Part shown: in pieces, positions 14,603 through 27,740 of the stretch
How positions within the stretch are numbered: the stretch's first letter is position 1
How the letters are laid out: each line of letters begins with the position of its first letter
Sequence record: NC_031107.2
Length of the DNA stretch: 64,000 bases
Reading direction: 5' to 3' (one strand)
Notes under the pieces: model-generated
What the model saw: the letters and a program-made list of their open reading frames with translations, nothing else
Told to the model about the DNA's origin: nothing
Databases searched by the model: none
Position numbers and translations under genes: made by a program

Positions 14603-15139
14603 ATGGCTACATCTGCTAAGGCTCAATTGATTGCACTGTTTAACACTGCTAACGCCTCCCTGCCTCAGGCACTGGCCGAAGCAGACGTTACGTTTGGTGC
14701 TGTTGCAGCTTATACTCCGGCTGACGGCGGCGACACGCGTAACTCTAAACTCACCCTGACCGCGGTTGCCGAAAGCACCCACTTCACCGGTGAGAAAGAA
14801 CTGCACTATACTCGTCTGGCTGCAAGCATCGTTGGCGCGAAAGCGGTCACCGATGACCAGGCTGACTGGGATACGGATGCAGAAGTGTTGGCGTTCCTGA
14901 ACGCTGACGTTACGGCTGCCGGAAATACGGTTGACCAGTTCGCACTGTCCGAGCTGACCATCACCCGTACCGATGGCGCGGATGCCGACGCTGGTAAGAA
15001 AATTATCAAAGTCGACATCAAAGATGGTCACATCAAGTTCCTCGCCGGAACCCTGGCGACCTACACCATTACGCAAGAAATCACTAAAACTGACCTCAGC
15101 ACTACTGACGGTGAGCTCAACGGTTTCTCCGCTTCTTAA
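14603..15139 (+). CDS. Small virion protein with shared N module and C-terminal DGELNGF tag (178 aa)
   Basis: DTRNSKL..FTG.KELHY.RL; ends TDLSTTDGELNGFSAS. Confidence 0.7.
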   Translation: MATSAKAQLIALFNTANASLPQALAEADVTFGAVAAYTPADGGDTRNSKLTLTAVAESTHFTGEKELHYTRLAASIVGAKAVTDDQADWDTDAEVLAFLNADVTAAGNTVDQFALSELTITRTDGADADAGKKIIKVDIKDGHIKFLAGTLATYTITQEITKTDLSTTDGELNGFSAS

Positions 15140-15207: not shown

Positions 15208-15714
15208 ATGGCTAAGACGTTAGAAGAACTGTTTGTCGATATGATCAACGAAGTAAACCCAGACCTTGGGTTGACACTCGCGGACGTCACTTTCGGTGCG
15301 CCTTCCGAATACACCCCCACGGATTCTGGGGACACCCGCAACACGTCTTTGACCCTGACGGCCAAGGCGGACAGTGAACGGTTTACAGGTAGCAAAGCAT
15401 ACCATTATTTTCGGTTTAACTTCACCCATCCGAATGGGGCAGACACCCCAACGTTGACGACATCAGACTTACCAAGCTTGTGGGAGGACGATGCACAGGC
15501 GTTATCGGTGATCAACTTGATGTTACCGAACTACAAACTCAGTAGCAGCGAAATCACTGTGACGCGCGTGGTCGTGGACGATAAGAATACCGATATCCGC
15601 ATCACGATTAACCCTAACCATCTGAAATGGCACGGGGTGTTTGTTACCCGTGTCGTTAATGAAGGGAAGATTAACTTGCAGTGGCGTAACGCCGAGTTAG
15701 GTGGATTCAGTTAA
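15208..15714 (+). CDS. Small virion protein, paralogue of 14603 (168 aa)
   Basis: DVTFGA..YTP.D.GDTRN shared with 14603; ends NAELGGFS. Confidence 0.7.
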   Translation: MAKTLEELFVDMINEVNPDLGLTLADVTFGAPSEYTPTDSGDTRNTSLTLTAKADSERFTGSKAYHYFRFNFTHPNGADTPTLTTSDLPSLWEDDAQALSVINLMLPNYKLSSSEITVTRVVVDDKNTDIRITINPNHLKWHGVFVTRVVNEGKINLQWRNAELGGFS

Positions 15715-15763
15715 AAAGAAAAAGACCTACTACCGTTATCGGGTAGTAGGTCAGTTTTATTTT
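15715..15763. terminator. Bidirectional terminator ending the radical SAM operon (-) and the 15208 gene (+)
   Basis: GACCTACTACC...GGTAGTAGGTC flanked by A-run and T-run. Confidence 0.75.
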
Positions 15764-15768
15764 ACCGC

Positions 15769-16425
15769 TTACAGCAAGCCGTTCTCAGTCGCTACCGATT
15801 TAATGCCGGTAAAGTCCTGTGCCTCGGCCAACGTGCGGATTTTGCGCTTAAGTTCAGTCATCGACGCAAACAGCTGGGCGTCACGCTCAACAATCGCCGC
15901 CAGTACCGCTTTACACGCTGCCAAATCGAAGTTATCGAGATGGTTGTTCTGTGCATCCACCCAATACTCCGGGGCAATGTCTGCCTGGATGTATTTGGCT
16001 AAAGCCGAGCGTGATTTCTCATCGGCCTGCAACACCACACCCTGGAACATCAGGTTGGAGTGACGTTCCTCTTCGTACTTCTCAGCCAGTCGCGTATAGA
16101 TAGGCTGAATCTCTTGATAGAGATAGTTTACCGTCGAGGTCAAGCCTTTGCGGATTTCATCCAACGGCAACTCCAGCACCTTCTCAATAAACTCTTTGGC
16201 CTTACGCAACGTGAACTGGGCTTCCGGTTCACTGAGGTCGTACTCACGCAGCTTTTTCAAGGCTGCTTTATCGGACACCCCGTTTAACAGATGATAGTGA
16301 AGCAGAGTACAATACCCCTGCTTGGTCTCATCGTCTTTCGCCAGAATGTTAACATAGTTACCATGCCGGTCAATGGGGGTACCGAATTCGAAGTAACGGG
16401 CTTTTATCTCGTCATTACTAAGCAT
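15769..16425 (-). CDS. Putative tail-fibre-associated protein with DUF4376-like C-terminus (218 aa)
   Basis: C-terminal LQADEKSRSAL...WVDAQNN...L...L.AI..R....F pattern resembles DUF4376 proteins found beside phage fibre genes. Confidence 0.55.
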   Translation of the reverse strand: MLSNDEIKARYFEFGTPIDRHGNYVNILAKDDETKQGYCTLLHYHLLNGVSDKAALKKLREYDLSEPEAQFTLRKAKEFIEKVLELPLDEIRKGLTSTVNYLYQEIQPIYTRLAEKYEEERHSNLMFQGVVLQADEKSRSALAKYIQADIAPEYWVDAQNNHLDNFDLAACKAVLAAIVERDAQLFASMTELKRKIRTLAEAQDFTGIKSVATENGLL

Positions 16426-16994
16426 TCAGATTCTCCTGCTAACCCGAGGTCCATCAGCAGACCGAAGTCAACCAGTTGGAAGTGCTCAGACAGCTCCTCC
16501 CCCCAGATGAACTTCATCTTCTCTGCCAAGTCCCCGTTCTGTTCCTGGAAGACAAAGGTCTGGTGCATTTCTTCACCAAACGAATCGAACTGATGATTGG
16601 AGCGTAGGGCACGCACACGAATCCCAACGAGGTCAGCGGCGTCTGGATTCTCCGGGTCAGCCCAGTTTAACGCCAGACCAATCAGGTTATCCACATCCAG
16701 GTTCTGCGTAGAACGACGCAGGATTTCGATTTTGTGGCGCGGGAATTCCGCAACACGCTGTTCGAAGCCCGGATTACGCTTCTCCACTTGCTCAATGGAA
16801 TTGTGGGTTTTCTCAACCCCGTCCAGCGGCAGAATGACGTTCAGCCCGAAGCGTACGCACAGACGACGCACTTCATCAGTGAACGCGTCCGGCTCCACAA
16901 TAGCGTGGATGTTGTACATGCCGTGCTTTTGCATAAACGCGGCAACAAGGTGAAGATTACGCTTCGTAAAATTGTGAATCAGCAACGACTTCAT
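16404..16994 (-). CDS. Hypothetical accessory protein of the radical SAM cluster (196 aa)
   Basis: ATG after TAGGAG; overlaps both neighbours. Confidence 0.65.
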   Translation of the reverse strand: MKSLLIHNFTKRNLHLVAAFMQKHGMYNIHAIVEPDAFTDEVRRLCVRFGLNVILPLDGVEKTHNSIEQVEKRNPGFEQRVAEFPRHKIEILRRSTQNLDVDNLIGLALNWADPENPDAADLVGIRVRALRSNHQFDSFGEEMHQTFVFQEQNGDLAEKMKFIWGEELSEHFQLVDFGLLMDLGLAGESECLVMTR

Positions 16995-18297
16995 TCGCTG
17001 GTGCTCCTAATTGGGTTTTCTCGGCTGCCTCTTTACGGGCACGTACACAGGACACGCAGTAGCATTGTGACCTGTCGTTCAGATCGGTATAACGGGTGGT
17101 ACCGGTTTTCTGGTAGAAGTATTCCGCAACCAGCAGTTTCGCGGTTGTCCAACCACACTGGCGACGTTCAGCGTGATAGGCTTTGCGGTCTTCCATCTCC
17201 CCGTCACCGTTCTCGTATGATGCCGCGGCACAACTACCACACGCGTGCTTCATCGGACAACCCAGGCAGGTTTCTGGGTAGTTGGTGTACTGTGTTTGGA
17301 TTTCGTTCAACAACTTATTGTTGTCGATGTTCACGATTTCACGCCCGCGCAGTTCAGCGATGGCCTGACGGGTGGTGACCGTGGACATAAAGCGGTTGCA
17401 GCCGTAAATCTTGCGGTCGAAGCCCAGACAGGTCATGTGGGTTACGGTACCGCAGAACGGACGGACGCGCTCCGGGTTCAGACGCGTTGCTTCGTCGTCC
17501 AGGAGCTTTTGACGCCAGTCCGGGTCCCAGGTGGCCATAAAGTCCAGGCCGTCCGGGAAGATGTGAGTCAGACGGTTACGTGGGTCTTTCTCGAAACCTT
17601 TCTCAAACCAGTAGTCAATCACGTCCATCATCTGGAGTGCAATTGACATCGCCATGGTACGTGGCAGAATGTCTTCGTACGTCACGTTACCCGAGATGGT
17701 ACCACCGCCGGTGACATCCATCAGGTGCTTCATGGACTCAGCGTACTTCGGCAGGGTTTCAGAGGTAAAGGTTGCCTTGATACCCAGCTCCAGGATACCG
17801 ACCGATTTCAGGTAGTTATACCCGCGCATGGCTTTTTCGTACGACCCTTCACGCGTGGTGGTGAAGATACGGTAACGGTCGTGAACTTCTGGCAGGCCAT
17901 CGATAGACACACCGATGGACAGCTTGTCACGCCACCGCTCGATAATCTCACGGTTCAGTGGCTTATCGAACAATGTCCCGTTGGTCGAGATAGAGAAGAT
18001 GACATCGCGGTTATCACGCTTCGCCAGTTCTTCAGCCGTTTCAAACACCGCTTTCAGAATCTTCGGCTGCATCATCGGCTCACCACCGATAATGTCAATG
18101 ATAACCTCGACGTTGGTCAAGTGACGATCGCGGTCGAAACACGCATGAATGAAGTCTACTGCGTCATCGACTTTATTGTTACGCGGATATTTACGCTCGT
18201 AGCAATATTCACAGTCGAGGTTACAGGAGAGGTTGGTCACCACCTGGTAGGTTTTGGTGATTTTAGGCTCTTGAGCCGGTGCTTTAGTATCACGCAT
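16957..18297 (-). CDS. Radical SAM/SPASM peptide maturase (446 aa)
   Basis: CNLDCEYC (CxxxCxxC), IIGGEP, SISTNG, VSIDG..EVHD..R; SPASM Cys set C..C..GC / CxxCx5CxxC / C; extra C-terminal CYCVSC. Confidence 0.92.
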   Translation of the reverse strand: MRDTKAPAQEPKITKTYQVVTNLSCNLDCEYCYERKYPRNNKVDDAVDFIHACFDRDRHLTNVEVIIDIIGGEPMMQPKILKAVFETAEELAKRDNRDVIFSISTNGTLFDKPLNREIIERWRDKLSIGVSIDGLPEVHDRYRIFTTTREGSYEKAMRGYNYLKSVGILELGIKATFTSETLPKYAESMKHLMDVTGGGTISGNVTYEDILPRTMAMSIALQMMDVIDYWFEKGFEKDPRNRLTHIFPDGLDFMATWDPDWRQKLLDDEATRLNPERVRPFCGTVTHMTCLGFDRKIYGCNRFMSTVTTRQAIAELRGREIVNIDNNKLLNEIQTQYTNYPETCLGCPMKHACGSCAAASYENGDGEMEDRKAYHAERRQCGWTTAKLLVAEYFYQKTGTTRYTDLNDRSQCYCVSCVRARKEAAEKTQLGAPANEVVADSQFYEA

Positions 18298-19195
18298 TGC
18301 GATTTAACCCCGCTTGCACTACACGATTGATATACTGGTAAGCGTCGTATCCGATAACTTCGGCCAGACGATTACACCCTGAGCTAAGCACATCGAGCGC
18401 ATTGTCAGACTGGTCAAACGTGGCGTCGGATTTTACCCACACCAGATTGCTACAGTCATCACAATGTTGGCTGAAGAACTTATTGATGCTCAGCGTCTGA
18501 TGGAACCCGTTAAGGTTGTTCAGCTCAGTCAACTGGTCGTGCATTTTGTTGTACCCGTACATGAAGTTCATGACGAGATCCTGGTTCAGCGGCTTAGGCA
18601 TGAAGTTATCAAACATCACGCGGTAGCCGTTGAACTTGTAATGGTACAACGCTTCGTGGAGTTTCAGCAGGTCGAGGAACCAGTGTTTCGGTGCCAGTTG
18701 GGCACGCGTAATCACCGACCACAACGTGATGTTGTCCAGTGCGTCAAACACTTCGAAAGCATCGTAGCGACGCTCCTCAGCGATACGCAGTAACGGACGC
18801 TCGGATTCCGCATAGCCGTCAAACGAGACGAAAATGCGATCCATTTGCTTAAGCACCGGCAACTGGGCCGGGGTCAGTCGCAGACCGTTGGTGTACATTT
18901 CATGCTGTAAGTGCGGGTAGCGCTCTTTCAGTTCAGCCATGAAATCCTGGATTTTGTTGATGGCCAGTAACGGCTCACCCCCAGTCCAGTTAATCTGCTG
19001 AATAGTCGGATGGGCTTCCAGCGTTTCAAACAGCTTCTCTCTTTGGACGTCGCGCGCACTGTCTTTGACGTCCATATACCCAACACCGCCACAGAAGCTA
19101 CAATCTAAATTGCACTTCGAGGTGGTGACTATCGACAGCTCCATTGGAGCTGACGAAGGGTCGCGACGAATAGCCGACACAGCTTCTTCACTCAT
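18290..19195 (-). CDS. Second, shorter radical SAM protein (301 aa)
   Basis: CNLDCSFC, WTGGEPLL, YTNG, VSFDG; short C-terminal CDDC...GCNRL; 8-nt overlap with the next gene. Confidence 0.9.
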   Translation of the reverse strand: MSEEAVSAIRRDPSSAPMELSIVTTSKCNLDCSFCGGVGYMDVKDSARDVQREKLFETLEAHPTIQQINWTGGEPLLAINKIQDFMAELKERYPHLQHEMYTNGLRLTPAQLPVLKQMDRIFVSFDGYAESERPLLRIAEERRYDAFEVFDALDNITLWSVITRAQLAPKHWFLDLLKLHEALYHYKFNGYRVMFDNFMPKPLNQDLVMNFMYGYNKMHDQLTELNNLNGFHQTLSINKFFSQHCDDCSNLVWVKSDATFDQSDNALDVLSSGCNRLAEVIGYDAYQYINRVVQAGLNRNA

Positions 19196-19211
19196 TGCAG
19201 GTTTACTCCAG

Positions 19212-20099
19212 TTATTCGAACGTCAGCTTGAACAGCGGGTCATCTTTGATGTCCACACCCGTCTTTAACACAAACGGCGAGTTGTAGGCATCGAGGATCT
19301 GGTTCAGAATTGCCTGACGAGCATTCACGCGCTGTAAGTCATCTAATGTGACTGTGCGAGCACGGAAGGCAGACACGACAGTTTTTTCTTCGTCTGTCAG
19401 GTCTACTTTAGTCAGCAGGAACGCTACCAGTTTGTTCAGGTCTGCTTCGGTAGAAGGTGATTCGCCGAACTTGGCTTGCACCAGGTACTGCATCCACGGC
19501 TTGCGGATACGCTTGGTGATTTCATGTTCGTCGAAAATGGCTTCGAATTGTTTTGCTTCCGGGTTCCAGATGAACTTGTAGCTGTAGGCCAGCAAGTCCA
19601 ACATGTTGGTAATCCCGTGCTTTTCAAAGCCAACAATTGGGTAATACTCTTCAACACCGGTGTATTGCTCGGTGTCTTTTGTCACCTGCGTATACCAGCC
19701 CGGCATAGAACCCATATAGTCCCAGCTCCATTCACGACGCGCCATCGGTTTCAGGTCGCTTTCAGCAAACGGAATCAGGAACATTTCCAGGTCAACCACC
19801 TGGTTCAGTACAGCGTCGCTCAGGAAATACTTCCCGTCGACCAGACGACCCCACACGTCCTGCTCACCGGCAGTGATGTGGATGTGTTGCACCGTATGGC
19901 CCGCCAGTTCGTAAGTTGCTTCTACCGTGTAACTTTTCGGATTAGCAATCTCACGACCACGCACCTTCGGCCACTCCCCCGGTAACTGGCTAATCAGGCG
20001 CACTTCGTCGAGCAGGTGGTATTTCACGCTGTCGTAGATGCTGATTTGCAGTGGGAAGTTTTGCGTTGTTTTAAACGCAAGGTGTAGATCGTTCTTCAT
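19212..20099 (-). CDS. Hypothetical protein between the precursors and radical SAM genes (295 aa)
   Basis: Clean ORF with AAGGGG RBS, tightly packed in the operon; no motif recognised. Confidence 0.7.
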   Translation of the reverse strand: MKNDLHLAFKTTQNFPLQISIYDSVKYHLLDEVRLISQLPGEWPKVRGREIANPKSYTVEATYELAGHTVQHIHITAGEQDVWGRLVDGKYFLSDAVLNQVVDLEMFLIPFAESDLKPMARREWSWDYMGSMPGWYTQVTKDTEQYTGVEEYYPIVGFEKHGITNMLDLLAYSYKFIWNPEAKQFEAIFDEHEITKRIRKPWMQYLVQAKFGESPSTEADLNKLVAFLLTKVDLTDEEKTVVSAFRARTVTLDDLQRVNARQAILNQILDAYNSPFVLKTGVDIKDDPLFKLTFE

Positions 20100-20112
20100 T
20101 TAAATAGTCCCC

Positions 20113-20319
20113 TTATCGGTTCCCCGCTCCGTGACTACAGCCACCGCTACACGTCCAGCTGCATGACCCACCACAGTTGTAGTGCGACAGTGGCAGTCCT
20201 GCAAGGTTATTGGTGCTACTAACAATCCCCTGCGTTGCGATAAAGTTATTCGCATCGGAGGTTTTGATGTAGCCCTCAACTTGCACCATTCGGTCACGAA
20301 TGTTTTTTAGTGAAATCAC
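20113..20319 (-). CDS. Cxxx-repeat precursor peptide P3 (68 aa, 4 Cys)
   Basis: GTG start after GGGGG; leader ISLKNIRDR as in P1; core NCGGSCSWTCSGGC. Confidence 0.85.
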   Translation of the reverse strand: MISLKNIRDRMVQVEGYIKTSDANNFIATQGIVSSTNNLAGLPLSHYNCGGSCSWTCSGGCSHGAGNR

Positions 20320-20362
20320 ACTAACCCCCCAATTCGTAAAAAGTTAAATGGGGCATCGGGTC

Positions 20363-20761
20363 TTAACGCATTGGTCCGGAACAACCAGAACAACCGGAGC
20401 AGCTGGAAGAACAGGAAGACGAACAGCCTGTTGAGCAGGTACCGGAGCAACCATTTGCACAGCCACCTGAACATGCACCAGAACACCCTGTACATGTTGA
20501 AGAACAGCCAGACGTACAGCTGGCAGAACAGCTTGCCCCACACGTTCCCGATGCGGAACCCGAACACCCGCCTGAACAGGATGAACACGTCCAACTACAC
20601 GTACCGCCGCAGTCATAGTGCGCCCGCGGTTGACCGCCAAATAAGTTGGAGTTGTTTGTGGCTTTGTTACGGATGTAACTTTGCACGCCCGCTGCGGTCT
20701 TTAACGCGTTGGCGTCGATAACATTCAGACGATTCTGAATATCTTTAAGGTTGATAGCCAT
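20363..20761 (-). CDS. Cxxx-repeat precursor peptide P2 (132 aa, 20 Cys)
   Basis: ATG 20761 after TAGGAG (track start 20830 moved); MAINLKDIQNRL leader; core DCGGTCSWTCS...CSGCSGCSGP. Confidence 0.88.
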   Translation of the reverse strand: MAINLKDIQNRLNVIDANALKTAAGVQSYIRNKATNNSNLFGGQPRAHYDCGGTCSWTCSSCSGGCSGSASGTCGASCSASCTSGCSSTCTGCSGACSGGCANGCSGTCSTGCSSSCSSSCSGCSGCSGPMR

Positions 20762-20772
20762 GTTGTCTCCTA

Positions 20773-21156
20773 CTACGGCCCAGAGCAGCCAGAACAGCCA
20801 GTGCAGCTCGATGAGCACGATCCAGAGCACCCGCTACATTTACCCGAGCAGCCGCCAGAGCAACTACCTGAACAACCTGAGCAACCCGAACACCCGGTAG
20901 AACACCCGCCCGTACAACTGCCTGTACATGTCGACGTACATGTACCTGAGCAACTGGTACAACTTGCCGAACAACCGTTAGAGCACGACCAGCTACACGT
21001 TCCGCCACAGTCCAACTGTCCCGGTGTCCATCCAGCGAAGCGGTCTTGGGCGTTATTCGCCTGTGCCGCTACCTGACCATCAACACGGGGGCCGGTGGCG
21101 TAATTGCTCTCCACAGTTTGCAGGCGGTCGCGTATGTTTTTAAGTGAGATTGCCAT
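20773..21156 (-). CDS. Cxxx-repeat precursor peptide P1 (127 aa, 21 Cys)
   Basis: ATG after AAGGA; MAISLKNIRDRL leader; core DCGGTCSWSCS...CSGCSGP. Confidence 0.88.
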   Translation of the reverse strand: MAISLKNIRDRLQTVESNYATGPRVDGQVAAQANNAQDRFAGWTPGQLDCGGTCSWSCSNGCSASCTSCSGTCTSTCTGSCTGGCSTGCSGCSGCSGSCSGGCSGKCSGCSGSCSSSCTGCSGCSGP

Positions 21157-21167
21157 ACGTTTCCTTT

Positions 21168-21207
21168 AAGAATAAAAAAGAGGACTCTGCCATATAGACA
21201 GGTCCTC
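21168..21207 (-). terminator. Probable terminator between the 399-aa fibre gene and P1
   Basis: GAGGAC...GTCCTC stem followed on the - strand by TTTTTTATTCTT. Confidence 0.55.
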
Positions 21208-21222
21208 GTGTTTTTAAAAAGT

Positions 21223-22422
21223 TTATCGTGTACCGGCTTCGGCTTGTACGTCGTCGCGAGTGGTGAGACTGTTGTTGACGTGTACCGCGGCCTGTACCAC
21301 ACCGCCATACGTTTTGTGCAGGTAGTTCGGGTGCGGGTTGTCTGCCGCAACGTGGTTTGCCAGGTTTTGGTTCGCCTGAGAAATCGCGTTGGTGTTATTG
21401 GTAACACGGGTATTGAGTGCGGTAATCTGGGATTGCAGGTTGTCGAACTTCTGTTGGAAGTCCTGGCCTTGCGATTCCAAATCCGCCACACGTTGGGTTA
21501 ACCCGTTAACCAGCGACTGCAGATCGTTGACCATCTTTTGCAGTTGCAGTACCAGCGAGTTGAGGTTTGCCAAAGCAAGCGACATCTTCTGGTAGTTCTG
21601 CGCCACCACGTTGAGCTGGTCGTTCCAGGCTACCAGTGATTGCACCACCGCATCGATACGGGCACCCAGAGCCGTATCTGCAGTTTTCAGGCCGTTGATA
21701 TCCTGAATAGTCGCATCAATCGCAGATTGCACGCCTGCAATCAAAGCACGAATCTCGGTTTCGGTCAGGCCGTTAGCCTGGTGAATATCGAGTTTGTGCA
21801 CATTGCCCTGGGCATTAACGTGGGCGTTCAGGGCATCGAGGAAGTCTTGCTTCAACCCGTCGATGATGGCTTTGATTTGTTCCAGCTGTACTGCCGAGCC
21901 GGAGTTAATCGCATCCTTAATCCCTGAGAGCACCGTGATGATGAATTCGAACCCGTAGATGTCACCCACGTCTTTAAACGTCGGAGCAGACGGGAACGTA
22001 TCCGGCACGTTGCGCAGGTCTTTGAAATCTACCGTACGGTCTTCGAGTTTCAGCTCTTTAATAGCTTGCTCGATGGCCACTACGTTGGCAGACTGCGGCC
22101 CACCGATGACTTGGGCAGCGACGGTAATAGAGGTAGGGATTGCCGAGTTGGTAACCACCACCGCCATAACGACTTCACGGCCTTTGGTGAGCTTCTCATA
22201 CGCCGGGTGCAGGAAGACCAACTCGTAGTCTGTCCCGCGTTTGTACAGCGTGCCAGGTTTGTTACTGGCATACATCTTAAATGTATCTGCGTAAAACGGG
22301 CCCGCCGGGAATGCAAAGGCACGGTTGACTTTACCCGAGCCCAACGTAATCGGTCGGGTAACGGCGTTAGAAGTCAGCGTGCCCCTGAGGTCAAGCGGGT
22401 ACTGAAAAACAATATCGGCCAT
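21223..22422 (-). CDS. Short coiled-coil tail-fibre-like virion protein (399 aa)
   Basis: N-terminal YPLDLRG...N domain shared with the long fibre genes; long heptad region; HVAADNPH motif; no obvious C-terminal head. Confidence 0.7.
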   Translation of the reverse strand: MADIVFQYPLDLRGTLTSNAVTRPITLGSGKVNRAFAFPAGPFYADTFKMYASNKPGTLYKRGTDYELVFLHPAYEKLTKGREVVMAVVVTNSAIPTSITVAAQVIGGPQSANVVAIEQAIKELKLEDRTVDFKDLRNVPDTFPSAPTFKDVGDIYGFEFIITVLSGIKDAINSGSAVQLEQIKAIIDGLKQDFLDALNAHVNAQGNVHKLDIHQANGLTETEIRALIAGVQSAIDATIQDINGLKTADTALGARIDAVVQSLVAWNDQLNVVAQNYQKMSLALANLNSLVLQLQKMVNDLQSLVNGLTQRVADLESQGQDFQQKFDNLQSQITALNTRVTNNTNAISQANQNLANHVAADNPHPNYLHKTYGGVVQAAVHVNNSLTTRDDVQAEAGTR

Positions 22423-22466
22423 GGCCAGAACTCCTTTGATTGGGGCGTCCGTGCCCCACAGCGCTG

Positions 22467-25400
22467 TTAAGACTTGAACATAAGATTGACCTGAATCTCA
22501 TCGAGGTCAACCAGTGCACCGCCCGCAGCATATTCACACGCCACCGACAACGTCAGTGTCCCCGCATCATAACTCGCCTGGTATGGCGGGTTAAGCCCAT
22601 CATTACCAGCATGTATCACGACAGCCGGTTCAGATGGCAGATTTGGAATCACCAGTTCGCGTGCCACTCTCACCACCCCGCCTCCGTTCAACTCGCTGGA
22701 TGCGTAGATAAGGAATGGGGTATCGACATCTGTTTGACGGAACACCGTACCGGTTGCGTCCTCTACCACTTGCATGGAAAGGATTTTATTTCCCAGCGAC
22801 TGGTATTGCGCGGCGGTCAGTTGTACGGACATGTGCATCACGTACTCCATCCCGGCTGCTAAACCAGAACCCACGATATTTACAAGGTCATTGCCGGTAT
22901 TAAACGTCATTTCCGACGACTGGCTAGTAGCCGCTGAATTCAAGCAGTATTTGAAACTGCTGATTCCATTTGGCACTGCATATCGCTGACTGATCATCTT
23001 GCTGGCGTCACCCACATTGCCTGGAACGGTAAAGCGCAGCTGCGCCACCGCAGTATAGGTTTCCCCTGATACCACTGGCGACATCTGTGCCCCAATCCAT
23101 TTCATGTTAAAGCTGGCCGCTTTTGCGTTATCCCCGGATACAGCTGCGGTTTCCATGGGGTTCTTTAACCAGAAGCGGCGAGCAACGTTCTGGAAGTGTT
23201 CCCACTTGGTGACAGCAAAACCTGCAAACCGCTTCTGAATCGGTAAAGCGGGCCGCAGCTGATGTTCGATACCTTTATACAGCTCCTGACCATCGGCATA
23301 TCCCGCCACCCCAAGACCAGGGGTCGAGAGCGCAACCCGTTTCAACAGACCCATCGAACCCACACGCGATTCACGCGCCGCCGAAACGTCATGGCGATAC
23401 GCAACCCCTGCGTGTTCTTCAAGCTGTTTCACCTGACCCAGACGTTTTACCTGCTGGATATCCTGCCCCGTAATACGGTTAGCATCGGTTGTCACCCAAC
23501 CCACGTACAGCAAACTGTCAGTGTCGGGGTGACGTACCGTGTCCATCAGATAACTTGCGCTACCGTTAACTACCTGAGCGTGCAGATAGAAAGTCCGATT
23601 GGCGTGTGCCGTTGGGTAAACATCACTGAGGTCAATCGACCAGGTCGGGAGTGTATAGCTGGCACTACCGAACGACAGCTCCACTTCTTCCGTCAGATAG
23701 AGAATCCACCCTTCGGCAGTCTCCACCCCAGCCAAAATAACCGCTTGCGGTGAAGCCGTGGTCGCAAAGGTAGGGTCAGCAACGAAGTTTGCCAGCGTAT
23801 ACGCATCCCCGGAACAGAACACACGGTCTGCTTTCGAATAAATGCGCGCGACACTATTCCAGCTGCCAGCACCCATGTAGACCACAGACTCAGGCGTGTG
23901 TGACGGAGCCATACGACGCAGTGCCGTTTTCCCTGCCACTTTTGTCCACGTCCCGCTACTGTAACGCAACCCTGCCGCATAACCGACCGATGCCAAATCC
24001 CCAATCAGGCGCAGCCCTAACGTGTACGGTAACCAGATAGCAAAATCGGTTCCGTTAGTGGAGGCCATAATCGGCTGACCCACACGTTTGGTTTTCCCAC
24101 CGGTAATCTCTCCCAACATCGCGTAGTTCAGACCGTAGTCCAGGTTGTTGAAGAAATCGAGCAGGTTTACTGCTGCCGTCGGGAACGATACATTGCCACC
24201 GGAAATGGTTGGCGTCATTGTGAAGTAATAGACGTCAAGGGTATTGACGTTGTTCACTACACGTTGTGCCGAGACCTGAATCAGCGTCAATGGATGCGCC
24301 GTACCAATACCCATAAACCAGACAGCAAACAGCGCTTTCCCGGCCTGATTAGCGGCATTGATGTATTCCGATGCGTACCCGTTTGCGGCCCCTGTCGGTG
24401 CCCCGTCCAGAATAGATTGCTTCATCTTATTCCATTCGGTTTGCGTCAGGTTCAACCGGTCAGCTGCCAAGGCAAAGTTACCCGGTACGTTCTTGTACGG
24501 GAAAGACTCAGGTCCCGTACAGTACCAGCCATTCAGCACACCCACGCCTTGAGACGGCGTCAGCATCAACGGGATGTTGCTCAACTGTTCATAGAGGGTG
24601 CTATCTACTACACGCCGCGCGTTGTCCGGGCCGTAGCCGCTGTAGCCTGCCACGTTATACGGTTTGTTCGGGTCAACTTCAACCTCGATTGCTGTCCGTG
24701 TACGTGGGTCAGATAGCCACAACAGATTCGAACCACCCAACCCTAACGGATACGACATCCCAGTGGAGTAAACAGACCCACGCCCCTGGTTTAACGTTGC
24801 CGCACTGTTTTGGGTGGCATCGGCAAACGCGGTATAGTCGTAGCGCAGGAAATCGTACAAGGATTTCCCTTTGGCAGGCCGGATAGCAATCCCTGGCATC
24901 TGGTCAGCATCACCTGCCAGCCACTGCGACACCACTACATCATTTACTACCGTCGCGAACGTGCGGTTGTTTGCCACACCACCGTGCCATTTGCCTTGGG
25001 TAAATCCATCAAACGTACCGTCGGCATATTTCACGGTTGTGACATCAGCAACCAGCGGGAAACGCTGCGGACATTCCAGCGTGACGGTGTTCGCTTCGGT
25101 ATCCAGTACAAAACTGGTTTGCCATTGGCTGAAATTCAATACGTCACCGTTAGGTGCAGCGAACCACATTGTTGGGGCATGGTTAACGCGCACCTTACCT
25201 TCGCTGACCCCGTACATGTGGTTGGCTTCTGGCCCATGTACGAAGTTAGTGGCGTTCGCCCATTTCGCTGCCGCTTCTGGCGTCAAATAGGTGACGAACG
25301 GGCCTGTTTGTGAGGCTGCTGTTTTCTGGCCGTAACGAATCATCAGGTTATCACCCGACATCCCGCTTTCACCGGTCAGTATCACGCGTTCAAACGTTAC

Positions 25401-27650
25401 CGTGGCATTGGCAACGTCCGCGGCTTTCAGTTTCCATGCCGCAACAGAATACTGCGCGTTTGTCAGCACGTTACGCAGCAAGAACACATTGGTGCCTACC
25501 GCGACGATATCATCCGTGGACACATTTGGCACAAACGCCGCCGTGGTAACGTCTGTCCCGTTACCGTTACGGTAGTCCGGGAAGTTAACCTGAGACACCG
25601 CGGTGTGTTTCGCATGATCCATCGACCCGTTGAACAACACCAGATAACGCTTACCATCCGACCCCAGACACACCGCACCGTCAGTACCGGTAATCAGAAT
25701 CGCCACCAGAGACACACCAGGGAACTTGCTCATACCCGCAGGCATATACTTCACCGACGTCTGTTGCACGTTGGTCAGTTTCTGGTCGTTGGTGATGTCA
25801 GCATACGCGTAGTAAATCGCTTCACTACCCGCTATCCCGTTACTGCCGTTACGCAGGGAATAGAGACGCCCTTGCTGATATCCGATTAACCCTTTCTGGT
25901 AGGTCTGGTTTTTGGTGAAGCCGGAATAGTTCCCCATTGCTGGAATCGGTAAGAACCCGCCATTACCAAACTTCGCCCCTGGAACTGTCCAGGCAGGCAG
26001 CAACGTGTTGATTTTGTCGCTGAGCTGGTCAATCTTCTGATCCAGTAAGAAGCCCTGACGTGACGTCACGACTTTATCATCCGTCGTATCAATCGCATCC
26101 CAGATTTTCAGCAGGCCACTGGCGGTGGTTGAGCCATACGGAACATTGTCGAGGTCGGCAATGGTGTGCGTGTGGTCACTTTTCGCTTTCGTGGCGAGGG
26201 CAGCGGTCAATGCTTTAGTAACCGGCTTTTCCAGTGGTGTGGTGTTGTCCATCTTGTCCACACCAAAATCCGCTTTGGTCAGTGTCAGTACCTGATTGCC
26301 GCTGGCGTCTTTCACGAAGCGTTTGCCGTTGATGCTGTAAGTGTCGTCCACATACAGGTCAAGTTTGGCTTTCAGGTCGGTAACCGCTTTCTGCGAGATG
26401 GCTGCACCGGTGGCCACGGAGTTAGAGATGTTCGTGATGGAGAACAGACCCGCCACTGCGTTGGTTGCGGTGGGCAACTCGACGTTCATGTACACCGGGT
26501 TGGTTTGCTTACCGCTACCGTAAATCTTGAGCGTGTCGCTGGATTTAAAGTAGGCATTGGCAGGCAACAGTTTAACCGCGGTCAAATACATCCCGACCAT
26601 GTCCGGCGTTACCAGGAACACCGAGTTAAAGACCGGGGCCAACACATCCATGCTGTAACCGCCCCACTTATCCCCAGCTTTCCCCGAATGCACCCACAGG
26701 GTATTGAGGCCCGCCGAAAACTCCACCCCGATACCGGTGTCGTTGTTGTCCTGGTCGGCTTTTAATACCAGCGGCTTTGGTGAGGTGATAATGAATTTCT
26801 CACCTTTCAGGCTAATGAGGTGGCCCGCGGTGGTCTGGAACGTAATCGCGTCGTTGTTGAGGACACGCAGACGACCCAGCAAATCCCCCAGGGTGTTATC
26901 CATTAACAGATCAACGTGAGCCTGGGAAATCCCCGATGTCGACATCAGGTTAACGAGCTCAGCCAACGTACGACCAAACGCTCTGGTAGCATCAACCGCT
27001 TTACCGACAACCGGCAACGCACCCACGTCGGTCGTGGTATAGCCGTGCGCATTGCTTTTCAGGTGATGCTGATACATCTCCTGCTCAAACACCGTGTTAC
27101 CGTTCTGATAGATCATATCCGTCAGTTCAGTAAACGCCGTATCCAGGTCACCGGCACGGGCCAGAATCCCTACGCGAATATCTTCGATGGCTTTTACCAC
27201 TTCATCGCGCAGAATAGCTTCTTCGATGTTTTCTGGCGGGTCAATCGGGGAAATCACCGGTGCGTATTTCATCAACTCTGACCAGTCCACGTTACGTGGG
27301 TCTTTCAGGTCAGTGCGCACCAGGTATTTACCAATCTCTGACTGCGGCAGACGATACTGACGGCCAACAGACAGGATTTCATAATCGACTTCGGTGGCTG
27401 TCAGTAGGATGAAGCCCCCGTAGATTTGGTCTTGCTCAGCTTCGGCCAGCTCTTTGAAATAGTAACCGAGATAATAATCCAGACCCTCGATAAGGGTACG
27501 TTTACCGCCAGGTGCCGTTGCATCCTTAACAGTAAGTTTCAGCCCAATGCGGTAGAAAGGACCTTCGGCAGGAATCACCGCATTGTATTTATTCGGGTAC
27601 GTTGCGGTCTTGAGCGTACCGTTAAACTGCGCCGCATCTTCTCTCGGCAT
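22467..27650 (-). CDS. Long tail-fibre-like virion protein (1727 aa)
   Basis: ATG 27650 after TAGGAG (track start moved); fibre repeats ATNAVAGL, STTASGLL, LTKADFGVDKMDNT. Confidence 0.75.
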   Translation of the reverse strand: MPREDAAQFNGTLKTATYPNKYNAVIPAEGPFYRIGLKLTVKDATAPGGKRTLIEGLDYYLGYYFKELAEAEQDQIYGGFILLTATEVDYEILSVGRQYRLPQSEIGKYLVRTDLKDPRNVDWSELMKYAPVISPIDPPENIEEAILRDEVVKAIEDIRVGILARAGDLDTAFTELTDMIYQNGNTVFEQEMYQHHLKSNAHGYTTTDVGALPVVGKAVDATRAFGRTLAELVNLMSTSGISQAHVDLLMDNTLGDLLGRLRVLNNDAITFQTTAGHLISLKGEKFIITSPKPLVLKADQDNNDTGIGVEFSAGLNTLWVHSGKAGDKWGGYSMDVLAPVFNSVFLVTPDMVGMYLTAVKLLPANAYFKSSDTLKIYGSGKQTNPVYMNVELPTATNAVAGLFSITNISNSVATGAAISQKAVTDLKAKLDLYVDDTYSINGKRFVKDASGNQVLTLTKADFGVDKMDNTTPLEKPVTKALTAALATKAKSDHTHTIADLDNVPYGSTTASGLLKIWDAIDTTDDKVVTSRQGFLLDQKIDQLSDKINTLLPAWTVPGAKFGNGGFLPIPAMGNYSGFTKNQTYQKGLIGYQQGRLYSLRNGSNGIAGSEAIYYAYADITNDQKLTNVQQTSVKYMPAGMSKFPGVSLVAILITGTDGAVCLGSDGKRYLVLFNGSMDHAKHTAVSQVNFPDYRNGNGTDVTTAAFVPNVSTDDIVAVGTNVFLLRNVLTNAQYSVAAWKLKAADVANATVTFERVILTGESGMSGDNLMIRYGQKTAASQTGPFVTYLTPEAAAKWANATNFVHGPEANHMYGVSEGKVRVNHAPTMWFAAPNGDVLNFSQWQTSFVLDTEANTVTLECPQRFPLVADVTTVKYADGTFDGFTQGKWHGGVANNRTFATVVNDVVVSQWLAGDADQMPGIAIRPAKGKSLYDFLRYDYTAFADATQNSAATLNQGRGSVYSTGMSYPLGLGGSNLLWLSDPRTRTAIEVEVDPNKPYNVAGYSGYGPDNARRVVDSTLYEQLSNIPLMLTPSQGVGVLNGWYCTGPESFPYKNVPGNFALAADRLNLTQTEWNKMKQSILDGAPTGAANGYASEYINAANQAGKALFAVWFMGIGTAHPLTLIQVSAQRVVNNVNTLDVYYFTMTPTISGGNVSFPTAAVNLLDFFNNLDYGLNYAMLGEITGGKTKRVGQPIMASTNGTDFAIWLPYTLGLRLIGDLASVGYAAGLRYSSGTWTKVAGKTALRRMAPSHTPESVVYMGAGSWNSVARIYSKADRVFCSGDAYTLANFVADPTFATTASPQAVILAGVETAEGWILYLTEEVELSFGSASYTLPTWSIDLSDVYPTAHANRTFYLHAQVVNGSASYLMDTVRHPDTDSLLYVGWVTTDANRITGQDIQQVKRLGQVKQLEEHAGVAYRHDVSAARESRVGSMGLLKRVALSTPGLGVAGYADGQELYKGIEHQLRPALPIQKRFAGFAVTKWEHFQNVARRFWLKNPMETAAVSGDNAKAASFNMKWIGAQMSPVVSGETYTAVAQLRFTVPGNVGDASKMISQRYAVPNGISSFKYCLNSAATSQSSEMTFNTGNDLVNIVGSGLAAGMEYVMHMSVQLTAAQYQSLGNKILSMQVVEDATGTVFRQTDVDTPFLIYASSELNGGGVVRVARELVIPNLPSEPAVVIHAGNDGLNPPYQASYDAGTLTLSVACEYAAGGALVDLDEIQVNLMFKS

Positions 27651-27740
27651 TGCAAAGACTCCTACTTTGAAATAAAACGGATACCCCACCCCGAAGGGTG
27701 GGGTTACCTACGGACGGGTGACGTCCGCAGACGTTCCGTC

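Follow-up and report, generated by a model that had tools for sequence, protein, structure and literature searches.

The window analysed here is a 64,000-nucleotide stretch of the genome of the Erwinia jumbo phage vB_EamM_Asesino (NC_031107.2, genus Erskinevirus, 246 kb), a relative of Salmonella phage SPN3US. Positions 18000–22500 match the Asesino genome at 100% identity. Within it, a minus-strand block opens with three genes, P1, P2 and P3, whose products end in a ladder of regularly spaced cysteines, and continues with gp182, gp181, gp180, gp179 and gp178. The block lies directly downstream of the baseplate and tail-fibre genes, with P1–P3 between the large virion genes gp187–gp189 and two annotated radical S-adenosylmethionine (rSAM) genes. 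The evidence described below makes it quite probable that P1–P3 are linked to this rSAM module as substrates of the adjacent enzymes.

P1 (20773..21156, minus strand; phrog_6085, E 6e-48) starts with ATG and encodes 127 aa with 21 Cys behind a Cys-free N-terminal part of 49 aa. P2 (RefSeq gp185; 20363..20761, minus strand; phrog_6085, E 4e-55) also starts with ATG and encodes 132 aa with 20 Cys and an N-terminal part of 50 aa. The short paralogue P3 (gp183; 20113..20319, minus strand), identified by reading of the open reading frame (ORF) and by PHROG, starts with GTG and encodes 68 aa with 4 Cys and an N-terminal part of 48 aa. A preliminary description of this DNA, made from the sequence alone, had reported three precursors of these lengths and Cys counts within 20113-21156, and the present reading bears it out. 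Also seen in all three proteins are the other features it had listed: the Cys-free leader of 48–50 aa, a common entry motif, Cxxx units broken by Cxx units and a nearly uncharged core. The first Cys is residue 50 in P1, 51 in P2 and 49 in P3, and the cores are entered through D-CGGTCSWSCS, D-CGGTCSWTCS and N-CGGSCSWTCS, respectively. All three N-termini read (M)A/V-I-S/N-L-K.

The Cys are mostly spaced by 4 and sometimes by 3 residues, with a single spacing of 8 in P2. The cores consist of C/S/G/T with one charged residue per core, and the Asp+Glu fraction of the P1 and P2 cores is 0.0. The units share the consensus C-(S/T)-G-x, in which Ser or Thr occupies position 1 of ~78% of the four-residue units and of nearly all three-residue ones, and Gly mostly follows at position 2. 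The reported common C-terminus CSGCSGP is found in P1; P2 ends CSGCSGP-MR. In a scan of all frames, the ladder pattern was absent from the rest of the 64-kb window. An AlphaFold2 model of P1, built with 30 orthologues and paralogues, has a predicted local distance difference test score (pLDDT) of 42, with weak helices at residues 5–20 and 23–39 and no fold in the ladder, as expected of a chain that needs crosslinks, partners or both.

Existing annotation represents these genes poorly. In RefSeq NC_031107.2, P1 is unannotated, and P2 (gp185) is started from an upstream GTG, as is the mechanically called ORF. Two further RefSeq coding sequences at P1/P2 are probably spurious: gp184 (20316-20594, minus strand) lies in another frame of P2, and gp186 (~20760-20900, plus strand) lies on the opposite strand. 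The SPN3US record leaves P1 and P3 unannotated and shortens P2, while several other records call opposite-strand ORFs over the ladders.

Conservation of the three ladder proteins

Phage homologues were collected by tblastn with P2, which matched 62 phage records, all of them SPN3US-like jumbo phages of Erwinia, Salmonella, Escherichia, Cronobacter and Proteus. Twelve of these, from five genera, were aligned with Asesino at the DNA level (13 phages), and 22 SPN3US-like loci from IMG/VR were added to give an orthologue set of 35 genomes or contigs. The order and frame of the trio are kept in 35/35. The synteny P1-P2-P3-gp182-gp181-gp180-gp179-gp178 behind the fibre genes is likewise found in the 13 phages and the 22 IMG/VR loci. 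In the DNA alignment of the 13 phages, the T and G of the Cys codons never change, whereas the third base does. Cys counts are always 21 in P1, 20–23 in P2 and 2–4 in P3, and both P1 and P2 contain 20 invariant Cys columns. The ratio of nonsynonymous to synonymous polymorphism (pN/pS) is ~0.3–0.4, in leader and core alike. Such conservation goes well past what chance would give.

Leader length and entry motif, which the preliminary description had put forward as conserved features, are kept within the phage group, at 46–50 residues and C-x-G-x-C-S-(W/F), respectively. That part of its proposed leader/core pattern, typical of RiPPs (peptides synthesized on ribosomes and modified post-translationally), therefore stands. 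However, conservation is stronger in the core, which has a pairwise identity of 0.70–0.73 and 20 invariant Cys, than in the leader (~0.55), whereas RiPPs are marked by a conserved leader and a variable core. By these sequence comparisons, each of P1, P2 and P3 forms an orthologous lineage conserved on its own, and they are not recent copies. P3 is thus not just the minimal version that had been suggested; it has its own conserved line of orthologues, in which the C-x3-C-S-W unit is always kept, with only 2 Cys left in Derbicusvirus.

The entry Trp had been described as single and invariant, and neither holds. P1 has a second Trp in its leader, and Phe replaces the entry Trp in P2 of three Seoulvirus genomes (SPN3US, SPAsTU and pEa_SNUABM_29).

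The neighbouring radical-SAM enzymes and their relatives

The likely ladder maturase is gp180 (16957..18297, minus strand), an rSAM/SPASM enzyme of 446 aa recognised by its NCBIfam matches and invariant Cys. Its CxxxCxxC Cys (25, 29 and 32) and its C-terminal Cys C282, C300, C344, C347, C353, C356 and C381 are invariant among relatives, and the seven C-terminal ones form the SPASM pattern; the Pfam SPASM model does not match. The best NCBIfam match is the PapB family NF047865 (130 bits; cut-off 340), followed by TIGR04115 (122 bits; cut-off 350), along whose entire profile gp180 aligns. Further matches are to HxsB (87 bits) and to the geopeptide, SCIFF and CcpM maturases, and relatives of gp180 match the QhpD-type family TIGR03906 at E 1e-23 to 1e-25. 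The nearest solved structure is the thioether-forming CteB (5WGG, E 4e-13). These matches mark gp180 as related, though divergently, to both PapB and the CXXX-repeat maturase family TIGR04115; all of its nearest relatives are peptide maturases that modify Cys, in most cases by forming thioethers.

Between P3 and gp180 lie gp182 and gp181. The small rSAM enzyme gp181 (18290..19195, minus strand; PF04055, E 1e-14) has 301 aa, with CxxxCxxC at residues 28–35, and is without a full SPASM domain. Its NCBIfam matches are weak, at ~40 bits (HxsC 40 bits). In one SPN3US-like lineage an extra gp181-type small rSAM gene (303 aa) stands between P1 and P2 (L025:5392-6303, and the same site in L026; locus numbers are those of the scan described below), which gives this lineage two small rSAMs plus the SPASM enzyme.

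The conserved partner protein gp182 (19212..20099, minus strand; 295 aa, phrog_8030) belongs to a family of 56 clusters among 1.84 billion representative proteins. Its AlphaFold2 model is confident (pLDDT 86, predicted template modelling score 0.82). A Foldseek search with the model retrieved nothing of related fold from the PDB (best E 0.73) and only gp182 itself from BFVD, and no fold resembling a RiPP recognition element or a chaperone could be assigned. The modelled gp182 structure may therefore represent a new fold.

Relatives of gp180 were sought in IMG/VR with an alignment of gp180 relatives, which yielded 203 relatives, of which 80 loci were kept. Close homologues occur almost only on ~240-kb contigs of the same phage group; the next ones, at 30–36% identity, are on other phage contigs. 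Among the viral loci that are not SPN3US-like, 74/76 have a Cxxx-ladder ORF on the same strand and at most 2.9 kb from the rSAM gene. In contrast, the 361 kb of flanking sequence lying more than 4 kb from genes for gp180 relatives contained no ladder ORF. The preliminary description had taken P1–P3 for RiPP precursors to be assayed with rSAM enzymes; with a two-rSAM block following them and a ladder beside gp180 relatives at nearly every viral locus, it is very probable that they are ribosomal substrates of the adjacent rSAM enzymes.

Ladder-bearing proteins at these loci have a median length of 266 aa (49–1120), with most of them falling within 200–1100 aa, and the ladder is usually C-terminal, after a median of 113 other residues. 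Several of them are tail fibres. The carrier at L040 has the Pfam tail-collar fibre N-terminal domain PF12571 (E 1.8e-40), those at L039 and L042 are fibres with classic repeats, and that at L041 has the entry C-A-N-G-C-S-W-T-C after a typical fibre motif. At L014, where a lambda-J-like tail tip gene is present, the carrier is a fibre-like protein of 258 aa, which contains HxH-type repeats and closes with G-Y-Y-R, then C-S-G-C-S-W-T-C and a Cxxx ladder. Downstream of it come a gp182 homologue (BLASTP E 5e-12) and three rSAM genes. The P2-like loci L040 and L041 have the order baseplate J and I, ladder-bearing fibre, a ~250-aa protein and rSAM genes, sheath and tube; at L041 a small rSAM sits between the fibre and the 250-aa protein. 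These ~250-aa proteins, each following the ladder-bearing fibre in L039–L042, are homologous to gp182 (hhalign 97.3%, E 1.8e-11). Upstream of the ladder gene of L045 there is a baseplate wedge gene, and other carriers include a GDSL esterase (L055) and a discoidin-type protein (L100). Ladders that share the entry motif and end large proteins, bona fide fibres among them, suggest that what is modified is a domain of a protein and not a peptide to be released.

Two of these loci have unusual domain arrangements. Behind the ladder-bearing fibre of L042 (6140-8200), a small rSAM and an rSAM/SPASM enzyme are fused in one 686-aa ORF, which supports joint action of the two enzymes. At L107 (3618-4733), a Hint/intein-like domain (C-F-P-E-G-T-R-V...) directly follows the Cys ladder; this arrangement suggests self-cleavage that would make the ladder a new C-terminus, or transfer of the ladder to a nucleophile.

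Cellular relatives are more distant. No close gp180 relative was found in representative bacterial and archaeal genomes (best 30% identity). Cellular loci with a ladder beside a gp180 relative account for 13/80, and some of them encode small Firmicute peptides of 45–90 aa that look like ordinary RiPP precursors. Beside the closest cellular gp180 relatives (26–30%), in Margulisbacteria/Termititenax (L115–L118), are proteins of 495–667 aa with Cxxx ladders and 79–122 Cys.

Profile scores place the viral loci relative to the named families. Viral rSAMs at L043 and L065 pass TIGR04115 with scores of 434 and 444, and viral ladders at L045 (39.8 bits) and L070 (24.3 bits) pass the target profile TIGR04114. 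The clade nearest to the window (L014, L040 and L041) scores 132–153 against TIGR04115, and P1, P2 and P3 reach 13.1, 16.4 and 11.2 bits against TIGR04114, all below its cut-off of 20 bits. On these profile scores, the viral set as a whole connects to the TIGR04114/TIGR04115 family, within which the window clade forms a divergent branch that has a partner of its own, gp182.

Several described systems are comparable in part. The CXXX-repeat system (TIGR04114, TIGR04117 and TIGR04115), which is bioinformatically defined, likewise has tandem Cxxx repeats beside an rSAM/SPASM gene on the same strand. TIGR04115-type loci contain two small ORFs (~190 and ~100 aa), whereas the window clade has gp182 and a second rSAM; the window also differs in its three dedicated paralogous substrates and in having Trp or Phe, not Leu, in the entry unit. 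A likeness to PapA/PapB (freyrasin) and to the ranthipeptide/SCIFF systems lies in the enzyme, as PapB is the top named family of gp180 and CteB its nearest structure. PapB staples repeated short Cys motifs successively into small thioether rings. Its acceptor is the Asp or Glu of C-x3-D/E, whereas the P1 and P2 cores have neither, and the substrates here are longer, with 20–21 units.

Cys-rich proteins that keep an N-terminal recognition part are crosslinked by rSAM/SPASM enzymes in two further systems, QhpD with the QhpC gamma subunit of quinohemoprotein amine dehydrogenase, and CrpC with CrpA of Methanococcus voltae. In CrpA, a leader-like N-terminal region of 47 residues is followed by C-terminal Cys repeats (PMC13692751). 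By analogy with QhpC and CrpA, P1–P3 may be modified as proteins that retain their N-terminal part. However, the acceptor motifs of QhpD and CrpC hold Asp, Glu or Gln, and these systems are cellular, without a tie to virion genes. HXS (HxsA repeats, HxsB, HxsC and HxsD), a bacterial anti-phage defence (PMC13128918), resembles the window in having four parts: besides a protein of short repeats there are an rSAM/SPASM enzyme, a second and smaller rSAM, and a small partner protein. The matches of gp180 to HxsB and of gp181 to HxsC are far below cut-offs. HXS also differs in its His-Xaa-Ser repeats, in being encoded by the host against phages and in its periplasmic effector with a signal peptide. 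By curated cut-offs, the window system is a member of none of the named systems compared. In the literature, we found nothing on Cys ladders of phages and no experimental work on the TIGR04114/TIGR04115 system. The CXXX-repeat/rSAM pairing, so far an uncharacterised profile family, is here seen to be widespread in phages, as judged from the 203 IMG/VR enzyme relatives, and to be tied to baseplate/tail-fibre gene blocks, where the fibre itself often carries the ladder as its C-terminus.

Proposed role and alternatives

Comparison of the ladders constrains their chemistry. In 49/64 of the other viral ladder proteins, unit 2 contains one bulky hydrophobic residue, which is mostly Leu (as SGL or TGL), and at the same position SPN3US-like proteins have Trp (36/39) or Phe (3/39). 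A docking or register element would account for such a pattern better than a crosslink specific to Trp. The Trp had been proposed as a separate aromatic-crosslink site, which is unlikely to apply generally, given the Phe of three P2 orthologues and the Leu of most wider-family proteins; a Trp-specific crosslink as a general feature was rejected on these replacements. PapB-type Cys-Asp/Glu chemistry was also rejected, since the P1/P2 cores are without Asp or Glu and the Cys-to-Asp/Glu chemistry of PapB and QhpD cannot apply to them. Links to Ser, Thr or Gly carbons occur in thermocellin and sactipeptides, and by analogy the ladder Cys are possibly linked to such carbons. Judged by what gp180 is related to, the likeliest chemistry is thioether stapling by this enzyme, at roughly even odds, and the acceptors must then be non-acidic.

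Our proposal is that P1–P3 are three non-redundant substrates of a phage-borne rSAM maturation module formed by gp182, gp181 and gp180, which would be a divergent, phage-specific branch of the CXXX-repeat target/maturase system. Docking and registering of the substrate would fall to the N-terminal 46–50 residues, where helices are predicted, and to the entry C-x-G-x-C-S-(W/F), which has just one bulky hydrophobic residue. The enzyme gp180 would then proceed along the C-(S/T)-G-x units and convert thiols into intramolecular thioether staples. A second modification, of unspecified nature, would be made by gp181, and gp182 would act as a non-catalytic partner or chaperone. The stapled ladders would be made late, in the reducing cytoplasm, alongside the tail-fibre proteins. 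They would remain associated with the baseplate/tail-fibre apparatus, as an element that is stabilised covalently and resists proteases and redox change, and would not be a diffusible antibiotic. As a whole (substrates, stapling and retention at the tail-fibre apparatus), we consider this the best explanation, with about an even chance of being correct. Gene content, conservation, co-occurrence and the ladder-fibre fusions of other phages were observed, whereas the chemistry, the sequence of the steps and the location in the virion are deduced indirectly.

That P1–P3 serve in the tail-fibre apparatus and are not released as peptides has a chance of just under one half. It is suggested by the constant genomic position, the ladder-fibre fusions elsewhere, the higher conservation of the core and the lack of processing or export genes. 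No protease, transporter/exporter or immunity gene was seen in the block or near it when the annotated neighbourhood was inspected. Disulfides are barred by the reducing cytoplasm in which virions assemble, so enzyme-made thioethers would give extracellular fibres covalent, redox-insensitive stability. More tentatively, rSAM-stapled ladders may be structural modules of tail fibres that in SPN3US-like phages are split into the subunits P1–P3. These would assemble, possibly as a heterotrimer through their short amphipathic N-terminal helices, on gp187–gp189 as a covalently locked distal element for adsorption.

Evidence from SPN3US bears on the virion location. In that phage, the counterparts of gp187 and gp188, namely gp167 and gp168, were detected in virions, and gp168 stands among the listed essential candidates for baseplate/tail-fibre proteins (PMC5694885). 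Mass spectrometry of SPN3US virions found gp167–gp173 and did not find gp161–gp166, which would include the rSAMs, the gp182 homologue and the shortened P2. For the enzymes, this absence fits a non-structural role. For P1–P3 it says little, because P1 and P3 are unannotated, P2 is shortened, three peptides were required and the cores are nearly without tryptic sites and would be crosslinked; it is thus weak counter-evidence.

Other observations also weigh against the proposal. The modification of P1–P3 is deduced from gene linkage, gp180 falls far under the curated cut-off of every named family, and the best-characterised acceptor chemistry, that of PapB and QhpD, is inapplicable to the ladder cores as sequenced. 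P1–P3 have no match in Pfam, so no fibre domain was recognised in them. A leader-only profile built from 39 precursors gave only marginal matches to the pre-ladder parts of 59 other ladder proteins, the best being to L014 (E 0.011). That match stops exactly where the ladder starts, and homology of the leaders to fibre segments is only suggested.

The first alternative is a classical diffusible RiPP, in which the leaders guide the rSAMs, a host or unidentified protease cuts, and the stapled cores are freed at lysis; the products would be antibacterial, signalling or superinfection-modulating peptides. The constant-length leader followed by a core and the rSAM/SPASM neighbours are what such a system would have, the Firmicute ladder peptides near related rSAMs resemble its precursors, and gp166 (P2) is not among the SPN3US virion proteins. 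However, the block contains no gene that would release, export or give immunity to a peptide, and a core that is conserved over its leader, with a Cys count fixed in five genera, is unlike fast-evolving bioactive cores. The trio also keeps its place in the tail-fibre module, and ladders are fused to fibres in other phages, where they form the C-terminal module of 250–1100-aa proteins. The RiPP reading of the preliminary description is weakened in these respects, and we regard a released peptide as less likely than the structural role, though a serious alternative.

Alternatively, the ladders could be non-virion assembly factors or decoys that aid the folding or trimerising of the giant fibres gp187–gp189, or counter host defence, and are then discarded. 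The position of the gp182-like and rSAM genes in P2-like contigs is that of a tail-fibre assembly chaperone, and gp161–gp166 are missing from the SPN3US virion list. Such a role is nevertheless improbable, since in other phages the ladder is covalently within the fibre itself, and a structural role suits three separately kept paralogues of fixed Cys number better than a catalytic or transient role does.

Metal binding is a slightly poorer alternative still, and is improbable too. The ladders would be metallothionein-like, or would form a metal-coordinating trimeric fibre segment, as HxH repeats bind iron in T4-type fibres, with the rSAMs otherwise engaged or assisting. Very Cys-rich, regularly spaced sequences, an unmodified chain without a predicted fold, and the L014 ladder that follows HxH-type fibre repeats within one protein are all compatible with this. 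However, it leaves the near-obligate linkage of ladder and rSAM/SPASM gene (74/76 loci) unexplained, no metallothionein match was obtained for P1–P3 in Pfam or NCBIfam, the Cys stand 4 or 3 apart and do not form the CxC/CxxC clusters typical of metallothioneins, and free thiols on an extracellular particle would oxidise.

Finally, that P1–P3 are spurious ORFs of low-complexity, TG-rich DNA, as the omission of P1 by annotators and their calls in other frames or on the opposite strand might imply, is refuted by conservation: frame, start, length and each Cys codon are kept in 35 genomes despite third-base variation, pN/pS is 0.3–0.4 and a PHROG family exists.

If modification and virion location both hold, rSAM-modified Cys ladders on tail fibres would be new, as no publication describing them was found. 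P1–P3 and their counterparts would be the first radical-SAM crosslinked virion proteins, a cytoplasm-compatible stand-in for disulfides. Thioether-stapled ladders would represent a new post-translational chemistry in virion assembly, explain the disulfide-like stability of particles assembled in the cytoplasm, and give phage engineering a new class of modules with receptor-binding or structural functions. In RiPP enzymology, P3, with its 68 aa and one to three units, would be a convenient minimal substrate, and P1 and P2 would be 20-unit substrates for processivity and for non-Asp/Glu acceptor chemistry.

Flanking features of the gene block

Immediately upstream of P1 are the genes for the virion proteins gp187 (399 aa) and gp188 (1740 aa) (21223..27689, minus strand), assigned through their SPN3US homologues gp167 and gp168. 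Between gp187 and P1 lies a conserved hairpin followed by a T-run (21180..21207, minus strand), recognised from invariant columns in 13 phages. Its inner stem (21187-21201) scored as terminator-like, and its loop contains TATG, which is unchanged across the five genera that the 13 phages represent. Late promoters of phiKZ have TATG as their core (PMC4666361). The hairpin is predicted from its sequence and could be both the terminator of the fibre gene and a phiKZ-type late promoter of the P1 block; late expression of the block, itself a prediction, is consistent with the TATG of the loop.

At the other end of the block, gp179 (16404..16994, minus strand; 196 aa, phrog_7988) overlaps the end of gp180 and, by tblastn, is found only in SPN3US-like phages. 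Searches of Pfam, NCBIfam and PHROGs yielded no function for gp179 or gp182. The last gene of the block, gp178 (15769..16425, minus strand), encodes a DUF4376 protein (PF14301, E 3e-9), and a predicted terminator-like bidirectional hairpin (15724..15752) closes the block 3' of it. Beyond this hairpin, gp176 (14603-15139, plus strand) and gp177 (15208-15714, plus strand) resemble tandem paralogues, with the common segment D-V-T-F-G-A...Y-T-P-x-D-x-G-D-T-R-N...L-T-L-T-A.

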